A DNA stretch of 64,000 bases from Phaeosaccion multiseriatum (taxonomy: Eukaryota; Protista; Ochrophyta, other classes): positions 868,001 to 932,000 of the forward strand of contig OZ218953.1 in the NCBI GenBank assembly GCA_965112735.1, in the 5' to 3' direction. Positions 2,600 through 50,580 of the stretch are shown here, one piece after another (the first letter of the stretch is position 1; the number at the start of each line of letters is the position of its first letter). The notes under the pieces are model-generated. The model saw only the letters and a program-made list of their open reading frames with translations, ran no database searches and was not told the origin of the DNA. The position numbers were made by a program, and so were the translations under genes.

Positions 2600-3964
2600 C
2601 TTCCCTTCTTCTCCTCACTCCTTCTACTCTTTCTTCTTTGCTCCACTCCCTCCCTCCCCCACTCACCGCCGCGTCCTGTCTCTTGGCGAACTCCGAGGCG
2701 ATGGTGGCGGGGGTGCGCGGCGTGAGGGGCTCCGAATCCGCGAAGGTGGCAGGGTTCATAATGTTGCCCTCGTTCTCCAGCACTGACACTTCGAACTCCA
2801 GCTGGGCCCCGGGGGGAATGACGGGAGTCACGCCCTCATCTCCATAGGCGTAGCGAGAGCTACATGTGAAGCGGGCGCGATCGCCGACCTTCGCCGTGCA
2901 GACAGGGAAAAGGGGTGGTTGGTTGGTTGGTTTGGTCGGTTTGGTCGTACAAAAGGAGCAGAGAGTTCAGACGCAAACAACAAAGGGAGAAGGGGAAATG
3001 CAGTGATGGGCGGCGTAGCGAGAAAAGGGGAAGAATGCGAGGTGCGTTCAGGGTCATGTGGAGACGGGAGATCACTGCCGCATGCAGCAGCGGTGCTGTA
3101 TGAAAATGACATTAGTGAACACACTGTACAGACCCATACACACACACACTGCCTACAGTGCGCCTCTGCGGTATCACGCAGGCCTCCTTGCCTCACCCGG
3201 AGTCCATTGAGTCCAATGTCCCAGCCGCTGATCATCGTGCCATCCCCAAGAGTGCAGCGGTACTCATCCGCCTGTCAAGGGGAGCAGAGAAGGAACGCGT
3301 GGGTGGGAGATAGAGAGAGGGGCGGGGGGAGTAGGCAAGCGCACAGCAAGAGAGGTGGGGGTTGGAGCGTGTGCGAACGCCTCGAAGAGAGGAGGGAGGG
3401 CAGCGGGTGCCAAGAAGACGGCGTTGGAGGTATCCGAGCGGAGTTTGATCCAGTGCCTCGCTTCGCTTAGAAGCAGCAGATATACACGCGCACCTGTGCG
3501 AACTCGGCGCCCGTGTCCTGCACTTTTGCTGAGTACGACAGCAGCGCAATGTCCCCTGTGGTCAGCTGCCGCCCAGTGCCGGACTGAATCACTTCCCTCG
3601 TTACGCCCCCGTCACCGCTGAGATCAATCATGGTACCAGAAGAAAGAGAAGGAGCCGCAGCACCCGGTGCAGCCATCGAAGACATGCTCATCATTCTCGC
3701 TCCTCTTCTCCTGCTGGGCCTGCCGCCAATGGCCCGTCCCCCACTCACGCAGCTGTGTAAGCAGCCCGCACTTCTTCCACTGCTATCCTCTGCGAAGCCA
3801 CCGCTCCGGAGAGGAGCATGGGGTACTGGCTGAGCGAAGGCGTCTACTACAAGTGAGTGGGGCTGCTGCAGCTGCTGGTGAACCAGGCAGACCGCAACAG
3901 AGGCCGCCACCACCAGAGAGGTTTGGAGGGCATACAACATGATTCCGGTCCTTTGTCTTTTCAC
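1999..3964 (-). CDS. Plastid-targeted FKBP-type peptidyl-prolyl cis-trans isomerase with a C-terminal membrane segment (4 exons)
   Basis: Spliced pieces read IDLSGDGGVTREVIQSGTG..YSAKVQDTGAEF | YRCTLGDGTMISGWDIGLNGLR | VGDRARFTCSSRYAYGDEGVTPVIPPGAQLEFEVSVLE, which is the FKBP consensus. N-terminal signal peptide ends ...VVDAF. Last exon contains hydrophobic IITFPLMFVVTYIAFGAVLYL. Confidence 0.9.
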
Positions 3965-4257
3965 CCCTCGTGCGCTCCTTTCTCCTTCAAGTAGGGGACC
4001 GTCCCTTCCTCTCTTCCTCTCTTCCTCGCGTATGCTTGACTTCTATCAAAAAAATGAGCGCTGCTCCAGGATTCCTAGGAAATTGGGTCTTCAGCGACCC
4101 AACTTGAATCGCCTAAATTCTAAATTGCGATATCAAATTGTAATTGTAACCATGTAGGAGGCGCGTGATGGAGCGATTTGGTTGTTGAGTGGGAATCAGT
4201 GGCCGAAGAGGGGGGAGGGGAGCGAGGAGGAGAGGAAGAAGGCACATGTCGGCCGTT

Positions 4258-4441
4258 CCCCAGACGTGCTATCGTGGATCGTCGACTATCGACCACATTC
4301 TCGATAGCATGCTATCGGCCGCCGGCCGATAGCAGATAGCACAGCCGGCGATAGCAGATAGCACGCTATCGGGCGCCGGCGATAGCAGATAGCACGCTAT
4401 CGGGCGCCGGCGATAGCAGATAGCGGATAGCACGTCAGGGG
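4258..4441. repeat. GATAG-rich palindromic MITE-like element, copy 1
   Basis: Terminal inverted repeat ccccagacgtgctatc (4258-4273) / gatagcacgtcagggg (4426-4441), 15/16 match. Internal tandem gccggcgatagcagatagc units. Confidence 0.65.
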
Positions 4442-4974
4442 TCGACCGCTAGAGGCAAAGACTTATCCTTTCAAGCCTGGGGTCTATTCTATTCAGTAGG
4501 GGGGGGGGGGGGGTATCGCCTCTCTTCACCTTTTGACACCTCCTCTACCCTGCTCCTCGCCAGCAACAAGTGGTGTTCTCTCACTCTCGCGACGACGCGG
4601 GACGTCCATCTAGACTCTATATCGACCGACTTTGCCTCTCGCGTGTCTGACCTTTCCCAAAAAAACAAACCTATGGCCCTCACCCAACCGCCCGCCTAGC
4701 CATCAGACGAGAGAAACGCCGTTCTCCTCTCCGCCTGAAGCCAGAAGCCGGAGAAGCCCTGTCTGGCTGGGGCGGAAGGACATGCATCCAGGAGGGCTCC
4801 GTAGCGCTTCGGGAGATACAAAAGAGAGTAGCCTATCTCACTCCAGGGGCTCTTTGCTGCGTAACCGGAAAGCTCCCCCCCACCCTTCTCCTCTTCCTTG
4901 GGCAAGCAAGCTACGCCTCCCTGGGGTGCTTTGAGCCTGGGTTCTTGGCAATGACAGCACTTTCACACTTCAAG

Positions 4975-34814: not shown

Positions 34815-35278
34815 TGTTCTCCCCTTTTTCTTGTGTTGCTTGTCCTCCCTTGTTCTCCTTCTTCTCCTCCCCTTGCCCTGCGTAATCTTTCAGACTCCTT
34901 CGAGCTGAAGAGCTGCTGCTGCTGCTGCTTGCTGCTGTTTGAGCAATCCGCGCCCCCCCCCACAAGAATCGATCCGTGAGGTGGCCTGGCGACTGTGGAT
35001 TACCAATGACCCCTGGACTTGAAAAAATCAGCACAGACTTGTCAGGAGGAGAGGCGCACTTTTATAGTGTCGACCTGTCCCTCCTTCCCCCTCCTCTAAA
35101 AGGAGGTCAACGCTGCTTAAATAACCACAACTGCTACATTCCAGCAGTAGTATTGGCTTAGTGAAGGATTTCTCATGGCAGGAAGGTGGCAGGGCTGGTA
35201 GTAGCAGCAGCAGTCAAGCAAAGAGAGGTACACATCAAACATTTCAAACCATGACACCACCAGCAGCAGCAGAGACAA

Positions 35279-38200
35279 ATGGAGGAGAATGAAGAAGCTG
35301 TAGCGGGGCAGCACAAAAGGATGGAACAGAACCACCTTTGTGACAGTCCTGAAGAGATTTCTGATTATCGATTTCTGGCGCACAGGGCTCTGAGAATACG
35401 AGTGGAAAGGCCGCAGGAGCGCACGACGACAATGACAGTGCCAGTGATTGGGACGACGAGACTTGGACGCAAGCCGGTGCTCTGGCAGATGCAGCCGCTG
35501 CGGCGGCACAACCAGCGACCGCTTCGAAAACTGGCACTCAAGCGAGAGTGGAGGCTGAGCTTGCAACAATCGCCGCAGCACAAGAGGAGAGGCGGAAAGC
35601 AACAATTGCAGGCAGCAAGGCAGGACTTGCTCAACCAGAAGGCGACTTTAGAAGATGCTTACAAAACTGGAGGAGGACGAGGCCGGCCCTCGAAGGGTAT
35701 AAGCGAGAAGAAGCGGTTGATTGCTGCAGCTATAAAAGGAATTGATGAGGATTTCCTGCTCCCAGCGGAGCAGGAAGAGAAGCGAAAGAAGGAGATGGAG
35801 GAGAGGAAGAAGAAGGGCTGTGACATGTCTTCGAGCGCAGACAGGGTAGATGGTGCAAGTGGTGACCACTTCGTAGGGTTTTCTTCGCCGCCCCTTGGTC
35901 GCACGTCTAAGCGGTACGTTCTCAATTATCGCCTCTTCGCCGCCCTTTCTGTACATACCTTGACACACTTTCTTGCCCCTGTTGCTCTCGCCCCCTTTCT
36001 ACATCTTTTCTTTGTGCTAACAGGGGTGAGAACGACAAGGATGAGGACGAGGAGGATGGTAATACGGGCGAGGAGGGGGGCGGTTGTGGTGGGGGAGGGT
36101 TTGGGACGAAGAATAGACCACCAGCGCAGACTGAGTTCATCAAGGTAGCACTCCAGGCGGCAAAGGATCAAGAGAAAGGGTTGCCTGCTTGGCAAACTCC
36201 CTACTTCAGGGCCTCGACGCCAAGCCGCCAGTCTGAAGTGGGGGGGGGTACGCCCAACGTGACGTGTATGTCCACCTCTTCCACAACCTTGGAGAGGACC
36301 ATCGACAGCCTCTTTGCGCATGGCATACCTCGTCAAAGTGTGTACAAGCTAAAGGATGGACGTCGCCGCAGCGGGCTGTGTATGTCACCAGCCTCGAGGA
36401 CAACTTTTTCATGGTGGGGACAAGGCATCGGTGTACAGAGCGATTGGAGGAGAAGAAACGGGTGAAAGCTGAGTACAACGAGGCGGAGAAGAGGAAGGAA
36501 ACATTGCAAGAGCAGGTTCGTGTGCTTCGGTTGTGTCTCATTTGCGCTACTCTCTGGGGCTTTTGATGAAGACGCCTCGCCTCTCTTCTTCGCCCTCCTT
36601 CCTTGTCCCCACCCCTGTTCAGATTGCCGCTCAGAAGAAAGCCGTTAGCGAGTACTCGACCTCCTTCTACTCCTACGACCCACGCGTCACCACAGCGTGT
36701 AAGGAGAACGTGTGCTTCCAGTGGGTGACTGCAGAGCTGCCTGGAGGATCAGCCGTGGGAGCAGGGGGAGCAACAGCAGGAGTAGGAGTAGTACGTGCTG
36801 GTTCTGCTGCTGCTGCTGGAGGAGGAGGAGGAGGACGAGGACGAGGAGCTGCTGCTGCTGGAGGAGGACGAGGAGGGGAAAGGGCAGCAGCAGCAGAAGT
36901 AGGACCACCGCCGGCACCAGCAGCCGCAGCACTGTGGCCTGCAATGGGAGGATCAGGGGCAGGACCGGCGGCTGGAGGATAGGGGGCAGGAGCAGCTGTA
37001 GCACCTGCAGACTCTGCTGCTGCAGAGGGTGGTGTCGCTCTCGGGGGGCGGAGGTGAGAGAACCCGCGAGACAGAGCTACGGAAGAGGAGGGAGGCCGAG
37101 AAAAGGAGAAGAACAGAGGCAGGCGCGGAGGGGAGGGAGAGGGCAAAGCTCCAGAAAAGGGCAGCGCGGCAAAGGGAAAGGGAAAGGTTACAGCAGGCTA
37201 AGCAGGGCCCTTCAGGGTGACTCTTACCTTTCTGTGTACGTAGTAATGGAAATAGTAATGGAAGAAGGGGAGGAGCGAGCAGCACCGAGGAGGAGGAGGA
37301 GGAGAAGGAGGAGGAGGAGGAGGAGGAAGAGGAGGAGGAGGAGGAGGAGGAGCTGCAGCAGCAGCACCAGCAGCAGCACCAGCAGCAGCTGCAGCCGCGC
37401 ACTGTGGCCGGCAACGGGAGAAAAAAAGAAGCAAGAGGAAGGCGCGAATAAACAGTTTCAGTTTCCTTTTTTTTCGTTTTTTTTTTTAACTTGTCGTCAC
37501 TGGACTATTATCATTACGAGCGCTCCACCTCTAATAAAGGAAGGCAAGAGCCCCCGCCTTATGCAGCGACGTGGATTGCGATTGGTAGTGTCCCATTACT
37601 TGCACAAGGTGCCTCTGTTTGGCTGCTGAACGGCGAGCGTGGCTGAGTGAGGCCCAGCATGCATGATCTGGCGCAAAAGGGATAATCCGATAATCCAGAA
37701 GGAGGACGCGGACAAGGAGGAGGGGCTCACGGACAACTGCGAGCTCAATGCCGACGAGGTGAGAGGAGAGAGAAGAGGCACACCGGCTTACGTATCATCG
37801 GGCATCTCTGCCTCTCCTTTTCAACCAACCACCAATGCTCAGTGCTTCTCTGATCTCTTTTGTGGGCCGGTTGTGGCTCTGACTGTGGCGGCGCTAACGA
37901 TTGGCTGTGATGTGTGGCTGCTTCCTGTTGCTTGCTGTCCTGTCCTCTTCTGTGCAAACAGCTTGGTTGGCGCACGTTTGCATGGATCATATAATGCAAA
38001 CAGACAGTTGGCCTTGTTTCCGGCCGGCCTTTCTGCTGGCAAGCACAAACTGGAGCTTGCCGGCGTCGTGGACAAGGGGGGTGTGGCCTTTATGCGCAAG
38101 CGGTACAGCGTCTGCCGTCGCAAATATTACCACGATGCAGAGCATGATCGCCGAGCAGCAGGGAGGAGGAGGAGGCATGTGGCTGCAATTTCATGCCGGG

Positions 38201-39610
38201 GCCGGGCATGGGAGGCCCCACGGGAGTGCCCCCCCCCTGGGATGGGCCCACCGCGGGCATGATGATAACTTTCCCTTTCCCGCCAGGTGAGTGAGTGCGT
38301 GAGTGAGTGCGTGAGTGAGTGAGTGAGTGAGTGAGTGAGTGACGGAGGGAGGGAGGGAGGGCGTGAGCGAGGGAGGGAGTGAATGAGAGACTGAGAGAGG
38401 GAGTGAGTGAGTGAGGGAGTGCGTGAATGAGTGGGTGAATGAGTGGGTGAATGAGTGAGCGAGTGAGTGGGTGAATGAGTGGGTGACCAACACGGAAGAG
38501 CGGGCGGTCGCAGAAGAGGAGAGAAGGGAAGAGAAGGGCGGATGGAAGGAGGCTGATCCTTCACTCCTTCGCCCGCCTTTTGTCTCTTTTGTCCCCTCCC
38601 ATGTCCCCCTCTCACTCCTTTTGCTTGCTCTGGCGAGGCAGCATTTGGGTGTTCCTGCCGAACCTTTTTGGCCTGAAATTGAGTTTCAGCTCATGAGGGG
38701 AAAAGAAATCTTTAGAACCCTATTACACTCAGCTGCCTGGGAGCTGCGGGGAGTGAAAAAACAGGCTATGGCCCGGGTGCTGGCACCCTCCCTTCAGCAG
38801 CAGCACTCCTACGAAGAGAGGTGAGCGAGAGGTTTGAGAGGTTGGGTAGGAGGAAAAGAGGGATGAGTAGCGGCCCGGGCAGGAGGAACAACAACTAGTA
38901 GCTACGCAACACCCTCTCTCCCGTTTGCGTCATTCTCCCCAACGACAAACTTACCCCTCCTGTGTGCTGTGGCACCTGCCTCAGTAACAGCCATGAACGG
39001 CGCAAGAGAGGAGAGAGAACTCAAGGCATGGAAACGTGCCTTCGGAGTCCTCCAGGCATGCGAACCATCCTTCCGACTCATCCTTTCATGGCCTGAAGCC
39101 TACGAGGCAGCTGCCGGACTCTGCCACGAACTTTTTCCACACAAAGCAGACCTTTGTGTGGAGGGCCAGGCTCACGCGCAAACGAGAATAAGGTGAGGAG
39201 CGAGAATGGGACAAAGAGAGGGCGGGGGGAGAGAGTGGTGAGAGCAGCAGCACACACTGGACACGCATCTCTGCTGCGCAGGGGAGAAGGGGAAAGAAGA
39301 CTTGAACTGCACTCTCTTGTTTCCCTTCCTGCCTGCGTGTTCGGGAAAGGGAAACTTGCCTCTCATCCCCTCTGCCTACCCTCTCGCCCCGCTGTGCTTT
39401 GGCAGCTGCCTCAGTGACAACACGTACGGCCTAAGAGAGGGAGAGAGGATGGGACAGGAGGCTTCCTCCGAACTGTTTGCCAGGTGGAGTTCATTGTTCT
39501 GCGAACTCTTCGACTCATATATGGTCCACATCGTGCACCTCGAGTTAGCCAAACCCAAGTTGTTGGGTTTGGCAGGTGTGCTACGCTCCAACGAACCATG
39601 TCAGGAAAAG
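35279..39610 (+). pseudogene. Degenerate transposase-like region (DUF6729-like N-terminus plus eroded MULE-like catalytic core), spliced and frameshifted
   Basis: Segments RDVYVHLFH..PLCAWH..KGWTSPQRAVYVTSLEDNFFMVGTRHRC, SFYSYDPRV, LFPAGLS..VVDK..FMR, QAMARVLAPSLQQQHSY, TAMN and HAQTRI resemble, in order, the motifs I recall for DUF6729-associated transposases. Catalytic Asp positions appear substituted and several frameshifts are needed. Confidence 0.4.
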
Positions 39611-40070
39611 GTGAGTAGTGAGTGTGTTTCTTTCTTCGTGTGAAAGGGGGGGCTTTTCTTGGCAGGGGAAGAAAGGGAGGAGAGGGGAGCGAGTCTTCCC
39701 TAGTGAGAGGGACTTCAGGGGGGAGAGAGAGAGAGAGTGAGCGGAGGGGGAGGGAGGGGCAACGCGGAAGGAGGAAAGTAAGGTAGTGAATGAGAGGCTG
39801 GGCCCTGATTCATGTATAATCCGTGGAGAGGAAGGTCCATCTCGTCCCGAGTTTGAGCAGTGAGGGAGGGAGGGGAAGGGATGGGATGGGACTTCTGTCG
39901 CCAGCTGTGACAGAAACGGACCTCCATCCATCTCTCTCACATCATTTCTTCCACATTTGCCCTTGCTCCCTCGTTTTGTCCTCCTTCTCGCAACAAAACC
40001 ACTCACCTGTATGTCCCACTGACTCTTTGCTTTCGTGCCTCGTCTGTCCTTTCGTCTTTGGTCCGGCGCA

Positions 40071-40565
40071 GCACTTGGACTCGCGGTTGGACTTGGACTT
40101 GGACCCAAACCGAGCAGGAGGGGCAGCGGCACCCGCGGCCAACAGCAGTAGCAGAGCGATTGGTAGCATTGGAAGCCTCGGAGGTATCGGCAGTCTCAGC
40201 GGTTCAACGGATAGTCTGAGTCAAGAGCAGGCTGGAGTGGGTATGGGCAGTGACGGTGGTGGTGGTGGTGGAGGAGGTTGTGGTGGTGGGGGAAGGGGGC
40301 GAGGAAGAGGAGGAGGGGGGGGGGAGGGGGCGAGGAAGAGCAGGAGGAGGAGGAGGAGGAGGAGGAGGAGGAGGAGGAGGAGGAGGAGGAGGAGGAGGAG
40401 CCACGCCCAGCGATGGCTCCGCGTCAGGCTCTCCGTCTGGACCGCCGGGTGAGGACAAAGGAGGGTGGATAGTTGTATCGTACGGAGGACGAAAGCACCG
40501 GCATGGAGCAAAGCCAGGCAGAGGGCCGGAGGGGCTGCCACAGACCGCCACAGGAGGAGGAGGAG

Positions 40566-40601
<36 letters not shown>

Positions 40602-43600
40602 GAGGAGGAGGGGGGAGACAAACTTCTGGCGAGAGCTCACAGCCCGTCAGAGTCTCCGCATCGAGGAAAAGAGCCCGCGGAGCAGCAGCAGGGGCAGCAG
40701 CAGCAGGAGGAGGAGGAGGAGGAGGAGGAGGAGGGAGGGGACAGGCATATTCGGACCGCCCATATCCTCCTCTTCCTCAGCTATGGGAGTGGATCCCCGT
40801 AGAAGCAGGAGGAGGAGGAGGAGGAGGAGGAGGAGGAGGAGGGGGAAGAGGAGGAGGGGGGAGAGGAGAAAGAGGAGGAGGAGGAGGAGGAGGAGGAGGA
40901 GGAGGAGGAAGAGGAGCAGGAGCAGGAGGAGGAGGAAGAGGAGGAGGACGAGGAGGAGGACGAGGAAAGGGGAGGTCACATCCAGCCGTAGTCTCCCCGC
41001 CGAGAAAGAGATCTCGAGGAGCAGCAGCAGCAGCAGCAGCAGCAGGAGGAGGAGGAGGAGGGGCAGGAGGGGGAGGAGGAGGAGGAGGAGGAGGCGGAGG
41101 AGGAGGAAGAGGAGCAGGAAAGGGGAGGTCACATTCCGTCATAGTCTCGCCACCGAGAAAGAGATCTCGAGGAGGAGCAGCAGCAGCAGCAGCAGGAGGA
41201 GGAGGAGGGGGAAGAGGAGGAGGAGGAGGAGGAGGAGGAGGAGGAGGAGGAGGAGGAGGAGGAGGAGGAGGAGGAGGAGGACGAAGGGGAGGAGGAGGAG
41301 GAGGAGAGGGAGGAGGAGGAGGAGGAGGAGGAGGAGGAGGAGGAGGAGGAGGAGGAGGAGGAGGAGGAGGAGGAAGAGGCGGAGGAGGAGGAGGAGGAGG
41401 AGCAGGAGGAGGAGGAAGAGGAGGAGGCGGAGGAGGAGGAGGAGGAGCAGGAGGAGGAGGAGGAGGACGACGAGGAAGAGGAGGAGGAGGAGGAGGAGGA
41501 GGAGGAGGAGGAGGAGGAGGAGGAGGAGGAGGACGAGGAGGAGGACGAGGAGGAGGACAAGCCTCTGGCGAGAGGTCACCGACCGGCACGCCCTCCCCGG
41601 CGAGAAAAAGACCTCGAGGAGCAGCAGCAGCAGGAGGAGCAGCAGCAGCAGCAGCAGCAGGAGGAGGAGGAAGAGGAAGAGGCGGAGGAAGAGGCGGAGG
41701 AGGGGGGAGAGGAGGAGGAAGAGGAAGAGATGGTGGCAGCAGTGACGAGGACTCTGACACTGAGCAGCAGGGGGAGCGCGGCACGGCGACGGCGAGTCCG
41801 AAGGTGGGGAGTAGGTAGCAGAGAGCTTTATCTTGCTTGCTTCTGTTTCCCTCAAGTAATTGGATATTTTTTTTGTGCTTGCTTTCATCGCTTTCCTCGC
41901 TCTCCCCAACAACAGGAGCCCACCCGCCGATCCACAAGGGTAAGGAAGCGCAAGGCTTTATCCAGCGATTACGAATTCAGCGACGATGGAAGCTCCTCTG
42001 AGGAGTGTGGGGCAACCGATGACGAGGAGTACAAGGGAAAGCAGAGAGGCAGGGGTGGACAGGGCAGCAAGAAGGTGAGAGCTTTTCTCTCTTGGCCTTG
42101 GCCTTGCCAGTATCACACTGAGAGAGTGTGGCTGCGTCCTCCCTGCCTTGCTCGGACCCTTCTAACACCCCTCTCTTCTTGACCCCTTGCTCCCGGTCGT
42201 GTATATACTGCCTCATCATGTGCGTCTTAACAGAAGGGGGAGGAGGACAAGGCAGAGGGGCAGAAGGCAGCTGTGTCGAGGGTAGTCCAGTCCTTCCAGA
42301 ACGTAGTGCCAAACTTCGTTGTGGACGTGGCCCGGCGTTGTCGTCCCTCAGGAGCACGGGCGGAGAGGAGGAAAAGGCAGCAGGTCCATGCTCAAGAAGA
42401 CAGGGCCAGCTTGACTTTCCAATCGGCAGACGCCGGGGGTAAGGTGCAGCTCTTGCGCAACAATTTCAGGTCATGGTGGCGGGCTGAGGAGCGAAACGCT
42501 TGCTATTTTTTGCCATTGATCGGCAAGCTCCGAGCCTTTGTGGTCGATCGTCCCACGGTCCTTGGTAGTGAGCAAGCGGTCATGATTACGGCGGTGCTCG
42601 AGGAGCAGAAGAGGGATGACCACACCGACTCCCAGCAGCAGCAGCAGCAGCAGCAGCAACAGCAACAGCAGCAGCAGCAGCAGCAAGAACACCACTCTTC
42701 GGGGAGAAGCAGTCGTGTAAAGTTCCGCATCTTCCTGATCGGAGACCTCACGGTGCGGGGCGTGGAGCAAGAGGGGGGAGAGGCGCCCATCACTCTGAAG
42801 GATATAAAGTTTCCGGTGGGGGGAGAGCGGGAGGAAAACTTTTCTTGTCTGGGTAAGCAGGAGGCGCCAAAGGCTGCAGCGGCCTTGCTCCAGCGCCTCA
42901 AACGGTCGGACGATTGCTTCGCCCTTGTCGTTAGACGGGAAAGTGGTGAGGGGGAGAAGAAGGGCCATTGCAGGGGTACGCTCCTGTTCAGCGCCCTCCA
43001 CTTGCCCATCGAAGACGTGCACCGGCTCAATGCAGTGGCACCCGACGCCATCACGAAAGAGGGGCCGACTGTGGCGCCGAAAGGGGGGCCGACTGTGGCG
43101 CCTGGCAAGCATTCTGTGAGCCAATTGGCGGATACATGTACGACCATCGCCGTAGCCGGGAAGCCCGACCTCGTGCCCAAGCTCGAGCAGTTGGCTGCGA
43201 AAGTGTTTGAGAAAGCGGTGGAGCGAGGAAAGGCAGGGGGTGAGCGGTTCGGAGCGATTGCTGCCGGCCTGCTCAACACGGAAACCGGCGCTATACTCGT
43301 GTCTGGCAGGCAGGGGCCGTGTAGAGCTCACCCCCAATCGGGTCTCCATGGCATCACCGAGGATGGTGCTCATGCTGAGCCAGATGTCATTTCCAGGGCA
43401 CTGCGGCGGGATGACTGGCATTGCAAGCAGGCGCTCGTGCTGGTTGTGTCCACAGCCCCATGTTATGCGTGCGCCAGATTCATTGTGCAAATTGTGACGG
43501 AGGGTAAGCTGAACATCACCCACGTCATTGCCGGAGAGGCTGAAGCCGTCGTTCGACTGGATGGAGTCGACAGACTGATGGAGACCAACATTCAGGTAGG

Positions 43601-44998
43601 TAGGGTAGTGAGAGAGAGACCCTCGCTCAGCCCACCTCCGCTGCCTTTCTCGCCCTCCAACTCACTCTCCTCCTGTGCTGTGGACTGACGCATGTACATG
43701 TGTGTGTGTGTGTGTCTGAAATGCAGGTGCTTAGAGACGAGGTGTTTTGTGCTAATCTCCTGCCCCGGTACACAGCGACGGCTATCCCCGACACCACCAT
43801 ATCGGCTCACTATGCGGCCGGGGAGGCAGATTGGCGCAGCTCCGCCGAGCTTCCTCTTCTGCTCTTCTCTAGTCCGGAGTGGCAGGAAGGGGGGGCAGGC
43901 GAGAGGCATCTCGAGGGGCCTCTCCGACGCTCGATGCTTCTCGCTCTGGCGGCGGTCGGCATGAATGCAAGAAGAAGCTGGACAGACATGGGCCGAGAGA
44001 AGCAAAAGCGGCTGCGACAGGCAGCGATGAGAGAGGGGGGGCGTGGCGCAGGCTCAGTGCCTCCGCTGTTGCTTGTGGGCTCGGATCTTATGCAGGTCCT
44101 GCTGTCAGAGAAGCAGGGCGGCGGAGAGGGCGGCGCGTCGGAGGGGAGGAGGAATGAAGACGCTGGCGCTGCTGCTGTGAGAGATGCGGCGAGTCAGTCC
44201 CTCCCCCTCCTCAACAGCAATGACGATGTCGTCGGAGGCTTCCAGCCTTGGTTCGACGCCGATCCCGATGTCAGTGCAGGGGTGGTATGTCTTCGACCGT
44301 GGGGGCTTCGTCTGCGGGAGGGACGGCCTTTTCCAGCTTCTTTGGTCCAAGGGGATCTGACACCCCCAAAGCAGGTAGAACTCAAGCTAGAGCAGAGGAG
44401 AGAGAAGAAGACGAAACACTTCTCAAGGCTGGAGCGCAGAACCGAAGAGCAGCGGTGGAAGGACGCGTGCAAGCGAGCTTCCTTCGGCCTTTTCGCTGGA
44501 GACCCACGAAAGGCTGGAGAGAAGGACTTGGCCGGCGCGCAGCGGACTCTCGACGGAGCTCATAAGAGGGGGAAGAGGATGACGGGGGGTCCTGCTTCAG
44601 ATGATGCGGAGGAGAAGAAGAAGAAGGAGGAGGAGGAGGAGGAGGAGGAGGAGGAGGAGGAGGAGGAGGAGGAGGAGGAGGAGGAGGAGGAGGAGGAGGA
44701 GGAGAAGCAGGAGGAGAAGGAGGAGGAGAAGGAGGAGGAGAAGGAGGAAGAAGCGACCTTCCGCGTGAGGGTCGCGAGCATCAAACTCCAGCCCAGCGCA
44801 AGTGTGCAGCGTGTGATCGAGCAGGGGCTTCATTCAAGGGGGCTGGCCGACAAGATTATGAATCGCACGGCACTTTTGGCGGCCGTGCTACCCCTCCTAC
44901 CTCGTTTTGTTTTGGAGGAGGGAGAGAGGGGCATGAGCAGCACGGGCGAGGAGGAGGGAGAGATGGAAGGGCCGGCTCCCTCCCCTACTAGCGACGCT

Positions 44999-45034
<36 letters not shown>

Positions 45035-46337
45035 CAGCAGCAGCCGCCGCAGCAGCAGCAGGAGCAGCAGCAGCAGGAGGAGAAGAAGAAGGGCCCACCG
45101 AGCGACATTTGCAACGACTGGAGGAAGCTGAGAGACGTTTTGTGGGCCTGGAGTCGGGCTCATGAGGCGGCCGGTGAGGAGGACACTGTTGATGATGCCG
45201 AGACTCTCATCCAGTGTGTGCGCGACGTTCTACTCAAACGTGATCCCTCGCTCCTCATCTCCATGGTGAAGGGGACTATCGTGGGCAAGGCGAAGCTCGC
45301 TGCCTTCCTCCCTGCTTTTCGGAGAATGGAGAAGCTTTTGGGTCTCGTGCGCAATGACGAGCTGCCGGAGGGCCAGAAGCGGGGGTTTACCATACACCCG
45401 GGTCAAACCTCCTACAGAGAACTTCTCGATCGATTCGAGACGTGCTTGGGTGTTTTGACGTCAGCCAGGTGCACCGACAGCACCCGACAGCAGGAGCTCA
45501 CAGCATGGGCATTGGAGTGCGTGGGAAAGGATGGAGACAAGAAGGTCATTCCCAACTCTTCAAAGCGGGGCAAGGGGAGGGGGAAGAAGAAGAAGAAGAA
45601 GAAGAAGAGCAAGCAGAAGGAGATAGAAGGGGCGCAACAGGCTGGGCGCACAAAACGAATGCGGGCGGGCTCTAGAAAGACACACGCTCAAGTCCAGGAG
45701 GAGCGGCTGAAGAAATGTGAGAAGCTTGGCACCGAAGTGTGGAAGAGCAGCGTGCGTGCTGTGTGGGGCGACATCGACGCCTTGTTGAGGAGGATACTGG
45801 CCCCGCTCTTCGCCCACGACAAGGAGTTTATGGGCCGAGAGGACAAAGTTGTAGGGGAGTTGAAGGAGCTTCTCGAGTCCGCATCCGAGGAGAACATGGC
45901 ATGGGCAACACTATTCGGATCAGAGTCGGCGAAGGGGCCAGGGAAGGAGGGGGAGAAGTTCCATCGCGACTTTGCCGGGAAGCTATTCTCCCTGCTCATC
46001 TCGGGACGGTATGAACGCTGCAAGCTGGTAAGTCTCCAGTACAGAAGGGGTCAAAACATGCAGCGCCTTGCAGCTGAGCTACAGCTGTATGTGTGTGTGT
46101 GTGTGTGTGTGTGCGTGTGCGTGCGTGCGTGTGTGTGTGTGTGCGTGCGTGCGTGCGTGTGTGTGTGTGCGCGTGCGTACGTGTGTGTGTGCGTGCGTGC
46201 GTGAGTGAATGAGTGCGTGCGTGCGTGCGTGCGTGCGTGTGTGCGTGCGTGTGTGTGTGTGTCTGTCTGTCTGTCTGTGTGTGTGCGTGCGTGCGTGTGT
46301 GTGTGTGCGTGTGTGTGTGTGTGCGTGTGTGTGTGTG

Positions 46338-46384
<47 letters not shown>

Positions 46385-46533
46385 GTGTATGCGTGTGTGA
46401 GTGAGTGCGTGTGTGTGTGTGTGCGTGCGTGTTTGTGTGTGCGCGTGTGCGTGCATGTGTGTGTGTGTGTGCGTGCGTGCGTGTGTGAGTGCGGGCGTGC
46501 GTGCGTGCGGGCGTGCGTGCGTGCGTGCGTACG

Positions 46534-46573
<40 letters not shown>

Positions 46574-49500
46574 TGTGTGTGCGTGTGTGTGTGTGCGTGC
46601 GTGCGTGTGTGAGTGCGGGCGTGTGTGCGTGCGTGCGTGCGTGTGTGAGGGAGTGAGGGAGTGGGTTTCTGTGAGAGTGAGTGAGAGTGCGTGAGTGCGC
46701 GAGTGCGTGCTTGCATGCGTGGGTGCGTGCGTGCGTGAGGGAGTGAGGGGTTCTTTCCTTGCTCCTCCAAAAGCTCATTGCCTGTCTTCCCTTCTTGTCT
46801 CCACCCCGACCCATCTGTCCCGCACGCACACACACACACGCACACACACACGCAGGTGCAAGGGGGGCTCAGTGAGTTGGCGGCGCTGCACCTTGCGCAG
46901 GCCGAGATTGTTCTGTCCTTGACGGATCACTTTACGCGCAAGGTTGGCGCAGTGGGGAGTGAGGAGCGTCGCGGCAAGCAGGGAGGAGCCAAGCTGCCCG
47001 ACAGAAGAACCTTGCTCGCCGATGTTGCCGCCCAGCTCAAGAAGATGGAGGCCTTGAAAGACCTCCATAGGGTTAAGGGTGACGCAGAGACACTGGGCCG
47101 AGATTTTGTGCAGTTCATGGTGCCGACCACTGAGTTTGCTGCAGACCCCAAAAGGAGTAACGAGAAGATTACAGCTGCAGCTGCAAAGGTGGCGTTGCAG
47201 GCGGCTTTCGCTGCGGGTGCCTACGTTGAAGCTTCCAGCAGAAGAATGGACAGGTCAACCTGGGTGGCAGCGGCGGCCTCTGGGGCAGCTGCCTTTTATT
47301 TTTCTCGTCTACAAGGATACCACCCCAGCGCCGAGGACAGGAAACTGGCGATGGCCATGGGGCGGTTGCTGGCACACAAGCTTGAGACAGCTTCTTCTGA
47401 TGCCTTCAAACCAACACCCTTCTCCAACGAGGAGACGACGGAGGACGAGAGAAAGAGTCGGGCGGCGTGGCTCAAAAGAGCGGAAGAGGTGATGCGAGGA
47501 AGCGAGAGTCGGTCCATGCAGCCCGTGATCCAGGCGTTGTTTCTTGTGACACTCTACAGGGAGTGGTACTCGAAGGGAACGCTCAAGGCTGACGATGAGA
47601 ACCTTTCTCGCCTGGTGCTTGAGGCCCTGGCACGCACGGAACCGAGCGGGCCGAGCGGACAATCCCCCGAGTGGACAGCGTTTCTTTGGGCTGCCCTTTA
47701 TCAGCACTTGCGGCAGACCTACGGCCTTCCGAGGATCAAGAAGAAGAGGCTGGGCAGTATGAAGCCCGCCAGCCTTGTCCAGGAGGCGGGGAAGATGGTG
47801 CACGAGGAGGGGAAGAAGGAGGCAGAGAAAGCAGCGTCGTCAAAAGCGGCAAGAGCGGCCTTGAGGTACTCACAGAAGTCTTTGACGTACGAGCTGGGGG
47901 CTCAGCAGACCAACAGCGGACAGGTGCGCTACCGTGCAGCACGAGAGACGAGGAGGGAGGGGCAGGAGGAGGACTTCAAGGTGCGCAGCAGCTGTGAGTA
48001 CCTGGAGGTGAGCTCAGAGTCCGACCCCAACAAGGAGCTGGCGACATCAGAGTGCAGGCTCTCTTATAGGAAGACAGCGCCGCACTCCCCGGACCGGTAT
48101 GTAGACAAGGTGATCGTCAAGCTGCCTACCGACAAGTGCGAGTTCGTTCTGTTGGACCTGACGAAGGTCCAGGACCAACGCAAGCTGCTGCGGCTGCCGG
48201 GCATGGGGCGGGCAGCAGGGGGGAGCCGAGGGGTGGAGCCGAGATGGGTGGCCGTGCGGGCAGATACGCTGAATGGCGAGCCTGTTCCCGGCACCATTCG
48301 GCTCGAGGTTATCTTTAGAGACTATGGCCAACCTCCGCCACCGCCTGCTGTTGGGGTGCAAGAAGGAATCGTGCCAAGGCTAGTCGACTTCCGCCCACCA
48401 GGGTTCAAGGAGGAGAGGGCCTGCTGCGCGCCCGAGGTGAAGGTGACGAGGGAGAAGGTGACGAGGGAGAAGGGGAGGGACAAGCTTGTAGCTCTCCGAG
48501 TTGAACACTCCGAGAAGGCCCGCTCTCTGCCGAAGGTGCCGAAAACGAAGACTCAGCGGAGGAAGAGCGCAGAGGCTGCCGCTCTCCGCAAGAGAATTCG
48601 CGACGCGGACCAGGCGAGGGCGAAGGCGTATGGTGGAGGGCACCGCAAGTGGCGCCCATTACGGGAAGGTGACTTGTCTCGCAGGGCCGGGCTGGGGCCG
48701 AATACCCATTCCGTGCAAGTGCTTGATGTCATGGAGGGCTGTTCCGCAGAGGATGCCACGAGCCTACGCGAGTACTTGGAGAAGCTCACTCCCTGTCAGC
48801 GCTGGGGCGGGGCGGATCCGGGGGTTCGCTCTTTCCTCCATATCTACGACATGGGGAATAACCGCGTGTATCGGGTTGGGCACAAGTTCTCTGCTAACGT
48901 GCGGAAGGTGCAGAAGAAAATCGCCCGCCTGGACGGGGCCATACACGAGGCGAGAGAGGTAAGCAAGGAGCTTAGTAGCGGGAAGGTGACAAGCTACGAA
49001 AGGCAAGGCAGGGGAAAACTGACAGCTCACTCGCTCCGCTCAGCCATGGGAGGAGGCCTCCCCTCCGCCCCTCCTCTCTTGCCCCTACTCTTGACTTGTT
49101 CCCTGGCTGCTGACTGAATCGGCCGCTCCCGCCCTCCTCTCCCTCTCCCTTGCTAGGGCGGCGACACTGCCATCCTCAAGGCGCTGTGCTCTGAGCAAGC
49201 CAAGATACGCCAGCGTTTGAAGCACCATACTTTGGTGCTTCACACAATCGCCATCAGGCTCATCACAGCGACTTTTACCCACTTTGTGTTGCCCCCGGTT
49301 GACGCCAAAGCGTGGGCGAGCCGGAAAGGCCGCTTGAGAGCGGGTCTGCCCAGGGACATGGGGAAGGACATGGCGGCTCTCTCCTTCGGAAAATTTCGAC
49401 AGCGGCTTCGATTGGTGAGTGCTGGCTGGACAGGCAGCCAGGGGAGGAGCATTAGGGAGCCCAAAGCTGTATACGAGGAGGCGACTGCCCTCGCTCCGCC

Positions 49501-50192
49501 TTGCTTGCCTCTTACTAGGCCTACTTGCTGCTCCTTTGCCTCTGCCTCCTCTCGCTCGTCCTCCTCCCTCACCAGGCGGCATCGTCTCCATCCTGCCCTC
49601 TGACGACCCTCTGTGAGCCCAGCGAAGCCTACACCACCAAAACGTGTGGCTCTTGCGGGGCTTACAACGAGGCCGTCGGCGGCAAGAAGCAGTGGGTATG
49701 CCCCACTTGCCACCAGATGCTACTCCGCGACCCCTCAGCCGCCCGGACCATCACTCTGTTGGGGTTGCAGGAGTTCGCAAGGGGCGTGCTTCCATCGTCG
49801 TCCGTGCTGAAGCCACAAGCGAAGGCACGGACACACCAAACCTCCCCAGTACGTCGTGTTGGAAGAAGGCATAAGCAAGTCGCCCGCCCTGCCGAGCACC
49901 TGCGTTCTTGTTCTTGTTTGTGTCTGCCTGCAACAATACCCTTCCCCCCCTTCCCTTCAGCTTTTCTTCTTCACTTGCTCTTGCCTGGGCCGCTTTTTTC
50001 TTGCTTTGCTTTCTTGACTTGTTGCCCTGCCTCACTACCTCGCCTGCCTGCCTGCCTGGCCTCGCTCCGCCCTCTCGCTCGTCCTGCTGTTGCTTTGCTA
50101 GTCGGGGCCACCTGCCGGGGGAGCAGCCGGAGGGCTTCTTGCCCAAGAGGCTGTACAGGCTACTTCGCGATCGGAGCGTAGTCTGTAGGTGA
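40071..50192 (+). CDS. Giant multi-exon protein: Gly/RGG-rich region, unknown domain, Zn-dependent (TadA/CDA-fold) deaminase, then enlarged Fanzor (TnpB-like RuvC + Zn ribbon) RNA-guided nuclease
   Basis: Phase-0 GT-AG exon chain ...41803 | 41916-42074 | 42234-43595 | 43727-46027 | 46856-48958 | 49157-49414 | 49576-~50190 stays in frame without stops. Deaminase HAE (43371-43379) and PCYAC (43458-43472). Ruv[16 protein letters not shown] (Asp 48815), Ruv[22 protein letters not shown] (Glu 49624), CPTC, Ruv[14 protein letters not shown] (Asp 49729). The 5' start and exact last exon are uncertain. Confidence 0.85.
46088..46745 (+). repeat. Long (GT)/(GCGT)n microsatellite within an intron of the Fanzor fusion gene
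   Basis: Directly visible; lies between the GTAAGT donor at 46028 and the CAG acceptor at 46855. Confidence 0.95.
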
Positions 50193-50580
50193 GATGGCTG
50201 CTGCCTGCTGCTCGCTCCCCTGCACCCCCAGCCACGCCAAAGTCATGAACTCTTTCCTAACAACCTGCCCCTCTCCCCGCCCGCCCCCCCCCCGCCCCTC
50301 CGCCCCTGCCCTCTGATTGCTTCCTGCCTCCTGCCTCGGCGATTGCTTTTGCTTCCCGCGATATCTTCCCGCCTCCCGCTCCCGCAATCTCCCGCCTTTG
50401 CCAAAAAATTCCAAATTTCGTTTTCTTCTCCCTTTTTCGGCCGGCGGTCGACGGTATAAAAATGCGCCGACTTGTCAGACGTGAAAGCTCACTTAAAATA
50501 AGCAAATAAGCAAAAGCAATAGCAATAGCCTCAAGATACCCTGTTCTGCAGTTTGCCTCACTCTTCCTGTGAGCAAATGA

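Follow-up and report, generated by a model that had tools for sequence, protein, structure and literature searches.

The closest described counterparts of the element analyzed here are non-autonomous Fanzor transposons with terminal inverted repeats (TIRs) as well as target-site duplications (TSDs). These retain nothing but their ends and a Fanzor gene, the 3′ end of which points to the right repeat; their guide RNA overlaps both TIR and TSD, and their TSDs reach up to 12 nt (Yoon et al. 2023, PMC10711439; Jiang et al. 2023, PMC10530073). A second precedent comes from Dictyostelium fasciculatum, in which the Sola2 Fanzor1 families DFa-1, DFa-2 and DFa-3 have common ends and ~2.5-3 kb of 5′ region, unrelated Fanzor remainders and, in most, a deleted transposase (Bao & Jurka 2013, PMC3627910). 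The present locus is a ~15.4-kb insert between the hisD and SDR genes within a 64,000-nt stretch of the Phaeosaccion multiseriatum genome (the window, C4:868001-932000; C numbers denote contigs of the assembly, which holds 67 Mb in 22 contigs). Our data suggest that this insert, which carries a deaminase-Fanzor gene, is very probably a non-autonomous copy of a multi-copy TIR cut-and-paste DNA transposon family.

The ends of the element and its Fanzor exon lie at the following window positions:

35036-35045, left copy of the 10-nt direct repeat GACTTGTCAG
35046-50468, the element, between hisD and the SDR gene
35053-35075, left terminal repeat, complementary to the right one at 20/23 positions
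49525-50181, Fanzor TNB-domain exon (Pfam, E=4.6e-7)
50446-50468, right terminal repeat
50469-50478, right copy of GACTTGTCAG

The 23-bp imperfect TIRs and the 10-bp direct repeat had been reported in the initial annotation and are present as described there. One copy of GACTTGTCAG adjoins the right repeat, and the other lies 7 nt (GAGGAGA) away from the left repeat. The flanking genes match Histidinol_dh (hisD) and adh_short (the SDR gene) in Pfam, and by coordinate arithmetic their start codons would stand 334 bp apart once 15,433 bp are taken out, close to the ~340 bp proposed earlier. Viewed alone, the inverted repeat could be coincidental: a 20/23 match within 20 kb is expected in ~1.5 pairs per window and is not significant by itself, which would fit chance matches or a segmental duplication with nothing mobile at the locus. 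However, once a 10-nt direct repeat lying no more than 7 nt from each end is required as well, the chance expectation drops to ~1.2e-4. The 23-bp end sequence, moreover, is matched 33 times across the 67-Mb genome and its reversed control not once, and at least 12 paired elements occur on different contigs with unrelated flanks. Coincidence or segmental duplication thus has a negligible likelihood.

The existence of further copies with these ends, which the initial annotation had proposed as a check, is borne out by the 33 end matches and their differing flanks, and the copies also fix the termini. Matches to the left 300 bp of the element number 44 in the genome, and those to the right 299 bp number 26. 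All left ends read ..TATAGTGTCGACC (..TATAGT..) and nearly all right ends ..TATACCGTCGACC (..TATACC..); the three mismatches between the repeats therefore represent a fixed asymmetry of the family rather than decay. The left terminus extends beyond the repeat by six conserved nucleotides (GGGAGA followed by GGCGCA…), and copies diverge only upstream of this hexamer. A left-terminus pattern that includes the hexamer has 16 matches versus 0 in the control, and GGGAGA itself is found in 11 of the 16, including a diverged subfamily. Right ends terminate at ...TGCGCC, so that homology between copies starts exactly at GGGAGA and stops exactly at ...TGCGCC. In the window copy, the corresponding GAGGAGA is the conserved hexamer plus one inserted base. 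The 7-nt left extension that had seemed an unusual asymmetry is therefore real in length, but the oddity disappears: it is the normal left terminus of the family with one extra base. One copy differs at its right end (C3:1284849, within C3:1282501-1285000), where a left-type repeat is followed by the complement of GGGAGA to give a symmetric 29-bp terminal repeat; this sequence suggests that the ancestral terminal repeat may have been symmetric and 29 bp long.

Family members occur in three forms: gene-bearing copies of ~7 kb, deletion derivatives of 2.2-2.4 kb, and deaminase-Fanzor copies of 14-24 kb. Their relationships to the window copy and to each other are as follows:

C5:371265-386919, twin of the window copy, 97.7-98.5% identical along its length, with the alignment stopping at window base 50468
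C6 copy, 14.1 kb, has window 35079-40975 and the final 90 bp in common
C1 copy (21 kb) and its relatives, share only window 35079-36741 and the last 80 bp
2.2-kb copies (four), mutually 99.0-99.8% identical, share window 35079-36398 and the right end
2.4-kb copies, deletion derivatives of the 6.9-kb C10 copy

The 2.2-2.4-kb derivatives are very young, and by analogy the structure of the family resembles that of Ac/Ds. The deaminase-Fanzor gene of the long copies takes the place of the 3′ part of a transposase-like gene that is the family's own. No DNA similarity to the window is seen in the right half of either the C6 or the C1 copy, yet each encodes there a deaminase-like exon and a Fanzor TNB-domain exon. 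This arrangement in the window, C6 and C1 copies is the same as that of the Sola2 DFa families, the closest match in pattern among described systems. The Sola2 elements differ in having 4-bp AWWT duplications and TIRs of 12-13 bp, whereas the algal family has 8-bp duplications, TIRs of 23-29 bp and a different protein.

Position also ties the Fanzor gene to the element. Matches to the Fanzor zinc finger (TNB domain) number 15 in the genome, of which eight belong to this family, and seven of those eight lie 410-716 bp inside a right end. The 3′ end of the Fanzor gene faces the right element end, with a non-coding tail that runs into the terminal repeat. Because diverged deaminase-Fanzor genes hold the same right-end place in at least seven copies, they appear to be recurrent residents rather than chance passengers. 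The initial annotation regarded the gene as cargo of a mobile element; its carriage by a multi-copy element holds, while this constant position argues against incidental cargo. With its clear TIRs, its TSDs and a Fanzor 3′ end directed toward the right terminal repeat, the family resembles the Fanzor transposons described previously (PMC10711439, PMC10530073). It differs from them in that Fanzor here forms the tail of a giant gene with a deaminase-like exon, within elements 14-24 kb long, and in that the partner transposase fits none of the superfamilies named in those studies.

Several further features were seen in and around family members. Within the window copy, GAG/GGA triplets run for 1.6 kb with several frames open (40220-41815), and a (GT)n/(GTGC)n microsatellite occupies ~500 bp (46080-46560). 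At C5:112021-123624, six matches to the left region of the element follow one another on one strand at ~2.2-2.4-kb spacing, in what looks like a tandem array derived from an element fragment. A cluster of family members occupies C7:3651212-3674596; there, 12 nt separate an inserted 2.2-kb copy from the truncated left end of a ~19.6-kb Fanzor-bearing copy, and a second Fanzor exon lies tail-to-tail next to the right end of the latter. The seven Fanzor/TnpB zinc-finger matches outside the family are at C1:1862200, C3:2422751-2423535, C14:2511749-2521137, C8:2562105 and C6:2535701, and four of the seven fit the full Pfam model much better than the family copies do.

Duplications of the target were surveyed in 12 paired copies, and a control with mismatched left and right flanks was run on 11 of them (110 pairings); ends at C14:1851115 and C14:3069918 and several solo right ends stayed unpaired. 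A flank duplication of at least 6 nt was present in 8 of the 11 true pairs versus 8 of the 110 mismatched pairings, among which the longest abutting repeat was 5 bp, seen only once. True pairs stand so far above mismatched ones that the duplications must be real. The copies with a duplication are:

C14:130305-132498, clean abutting 8-bp TSD
C14:3043371-3045863, clean abutting 8-bp TSD
C13:272440-274898, clean abutting 8-bp TSD
C13:591429-598887, clean abutting 8-bp TSD
Window copy, 10-bp TSD
Four other copies, TSDs of 9, 7, 6 and 5 bp, some junctions with 1-10 extra bases

The family thus shows two features of class II TIR elements: the same inverted termini on many copies with unrelated flanks, and TSDs that abut both ends (cleanly, at 8 bp, in four copies). 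Insertion also has a target preference with a central run of T. The first eight bases beyond the right end are biased, roughly to GATTTnCC, with T at position 5 in 17 of 22 right flanks, and GAYTT occurs within the first 8 nt of 4 of the 22 against a background of 0.0046 (p=3e-6). A minority of right flanks have runs of A, consistent with insertion in the opposite orientation. The window duplication GACTTGTC agrees with this GATTTnCC-like pattern. At one 2.2-kb copy (C14:2479308-2481500), an 11-nt sequence, CGGTCGTGGGG, is found on both flanks, 6 nt beyond each end, and the bases between it and the ends are near-identical on the two sides (GACTTT and ACTTTA); either a local tandem repeat was the target or the flank of a donor site was brought along.

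The shared left region of the element corresponds to the 5′ exons of a large multi-exon gene that is complete only in the ~7-kb copies (C13:591429-598887 and C10). Searched one by one in six frames, its exons give 82 and 18 matches in the genome, all of them where the left region or the ends of the element match as well. Pfam identifies a 3′-5′ exonuclease in this gene above the cut-off (E=4.4e-8), along with weak DUF6729 matches that all fall below it (E=0.049 and 0.0084). A protein-language-model search placed the N-terminal exon nearest to DUF6729 and to KDZ-associated CxC4/CxC5 zinc-domain clusters, and the N-terminus of the C13:591429-598887 protein is zinc-rich and DUF6729-like. A word search with the N-terminal exon gave no match, nor did a six-frame genome search for DUF6729, to which its control likewise gave no response. 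For every long reading frame in the window, C6, C1, C10 and C13 copies, Pfam returned only deaminase, TNB-domain, exonuclease and low-complexity matches, and sequence searches of the Protein Data Bank returned only glycine-linker noise and R3H.

A profile search of 1.84 billion proteins found only eight weak matches, with a few distant eukaryotic relatives. Through one of these relatives we reached P0010, a 1112-residue transcript-derived protein of another eukaryote with an R3H domain, which is collinear with the algal exons (E=5.5e-13 and 4.5e-45). Three motifs are conserved between the algal exons and P0010, as aligned by pairwise BLAST: DH[ST]xK, (L/I)DN ~73 residues further on, and SALEGYH. 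Judged by motif, these may form the catalytic triad of a DDE-type transposase, with ~360 residues between the second D and the E. The intervening segment in the alga holds an R3H-like stretch and a DEDDy 3′-5′ exonuclease with the motifs LGFDRE and YAANDAY (C13:591300-598400, minus strand, ~2661-4719 of that piece); P0010 has the R3H domain and lacks the exonuclease.

Which transposase superfamily might include this protein was considered from both the protein and the ends. Mutator-like elements (MULEs), like the family, have TSDs of variable length (8-11 bp). Their transposases have motifs similar to D-x-T-x-K, D-x(1,2)-H…KGL and S-x-x-E-x-x-H, a resemblance that is a lead rather than a test. 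However, Pfam MULE (PF10551), DBD_Tnp_Mut and Transposase_mut had no match in the exons or in P0010 at E up to 10, and the family is unlike MULEs in its short TIRs and in the ~360 residues, with R3H (plus the exonuclease in this alga), that separate the second D from the E. The Mutator-like affinity suggested earlier from TSDs of 9-11 bp is accordingly not upheld: the 10-bp duplication of the window copy is genuine and one of 9 bp also occurs, but the clean TSD of the family is 8 bp and the MULE model is silent. An 8-bp TSD would suit hAT elements, but Pfam returned no hAT domain for any of the family's reading frames that were scanned. The TSD of Zisupton is also 8 bp, and the language-model placement of the N-terminal exon near DUF6729 and CxC4/CxC5 provides a lead toward KDZ/Zisupton; the KDZ catalytic domain, PF18758, had no match in a six-frame genome search or in the scanned frames, and the six-frame controls gave no match either.

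A rolling-circle origin has to be weighed as well. In a Helitron2-type family like CRe-1, CRe-2 and CRe-3 of Chlamydomonas, the repeats would be asymmetric terminal inverted repeats and the duplications variable and non-canonical. The likeness includes an algal host, flank duplications that range from 5 to 10 bp, extra bases at some junctions, T-rich targets and a surplus of right-type over left-type ends (24 versus 9 of 33), and such features have been described for algal Fanzor elements (Bao & Jurka 2013, PMC3627910). In Helitron2, though, the 5′ repeat lies 0-2 bp from its end, and 20-30 bp with a hairpin downstream of the repeat separate the 3′ repeat from the other end; the 5′ end is T and the partner is a Rep/helicase (PMC3627910). 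Here, the repeats lie 6 nt (left) and 0 nt (right) from the ends, the left end begins with G, and clean 8-bp duplications flank full-length copies, in contrast to the full-length CRe copies, which lack them. A Rep/helicase partner did not come to light: the sole Helitron_like_N match in the genome, at C6:2560292, is away from any family end, and the family has a D…D…E-like gene of its own. Membership in Helitron2 was rejected on end geometry, clean TSDs and partner, and we regard a rolling-circle origin as very unlikely. None of the named superfamilies (MULE, hAT, KDZ or Helitron2) passed a membership test.

The TIR cut-and-paste assignment is itself opposed by several observations. Three of the 12 paired copies have no TSD, and the 10-bp TSD of the window copy departs from the clean 8 bp of the family. 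Junctions are irregular even between copies that are 99% identical, with duplications of 5, 8 and 9 bp, one copy without any, and several with 1-10 extra nucleotides, an irregularity that would not be expected of a classical fixed-stagger transposase. No Pfam transposase model matched the family exons or P0010, even at E up to 10, and the AlphaFold model of P0010 (mean predicted local distance difference test score, pLDDT, 39.8) is unusable for a DDE reading. No empty site came to light: the assembly has the left flank in a single copy, and metagenome scans for the right flank and for the end pattern gave no match.

Such junctions might instead reflect end joining. Long Fanzor copies, including that in the window, could have been captured at staggered double-strand breaks, possibly made by Fanzor, and sealed by end joining rather than placed by a transposase. 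Consistent with this, both 15-kb twins have non-canonical junctions (10 bp plus an extra base in the window; a 7-bp duplication plus 5 nt of filler on C5), and the clean 8-bp TSDs are all confined to copies of 2.2-7.5 kb. Irregular junctions are also found in 2.2-kb copies that have no Fanzor, however, and the long copies have ends defined to the exact base, as cutting by a transposase predicts. Nothing in the analysis, furthermore, points to nuclease activity or to a guide RNA; at the right end, an Rfam search gave no match and the predicted fold is no better than those of shuffled sequences (z=-0.32). Break capture is therefore very unlikely to account for the long copies.

Within the cut-and-paste assignment, the protein and the junctions could be joined in a single account, which we put forward tentatively and consider doubtful. 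Here, the family would belong to an undescribed eukaryotic DDE lineage, whose transposase would join a zinc domain like DUF6729 to a catalytic core interrupted by R3H and, in this alga, by a DEDDy exonuclease that looks functional. The 3′ half of its gene would have been swapped repeatedly for deaminase-Fanzor while the ends were kept, and the irregular duplications and filler would reflect an unusual integration chemistry rather than decay. The transposase lineage matched no named superfamily and is possibly new.

In kind, the window element is an ordinary transposon insertion, a non-autonomous Fanzor-bearing TIR transposon. The remnant of its 5′ gene is frameshifted, and it has lost ~60 bp of the left subterminal repeats (GTCCGTGGAkCGAyTTTTTT), which are present in two to three copies in other elements. 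As read from its sequence, the copy is non-autonomous and is probably also immobilized, since these subterminal repeats are deleted and the terminal hexamer has a 1-nt insertion. The ~98% identity to its twin on C5 points to a fairly young insertion, in line with the recent insertion initially supposed, although one somewhat older than the 2.2-kb burst. A transposase encoded by a gene-bearing copy (C13:591429-598887, for example) may have acted in trans to insert the element into the shared hisD/SDR promoter. Such a transposase would bind the terminal and subterminal repeats and cut the target in staggered fashion, and repair would then leave the duplication. By analogy with TnpB, Fanzor and an RNA that reads out through the right end may favor retention of the element (model of PMC10711439, PMC10530073). 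Both terminal repeats contain TATAAAA, pointing outward (the left one toward hisD, the right one toward the SDR gene) and ~20 bp from the element edge. The element might thereby supply TATA boxes to the two genes whose common promoter it split.

For the annotation of this locus, our results mean that 15.4 kb now lie between two genes, hisD and the SDR gene, that formerly stood 334 bp from each other, and that each faces a terminal repeat with an outward TATAAAA. The ends of an element that carries a deaminase-Fanzor gene are now fixed to the base, which tells where to look for a guide RNA and its guide, namely on the way out through the right repeat and into the flank. With its very young 2.2-kb copies and its gene-bearing 7-kb copies, the family may still be active, and it is a possible system for testing what Fanzor does for a cut-and-paste transposon.

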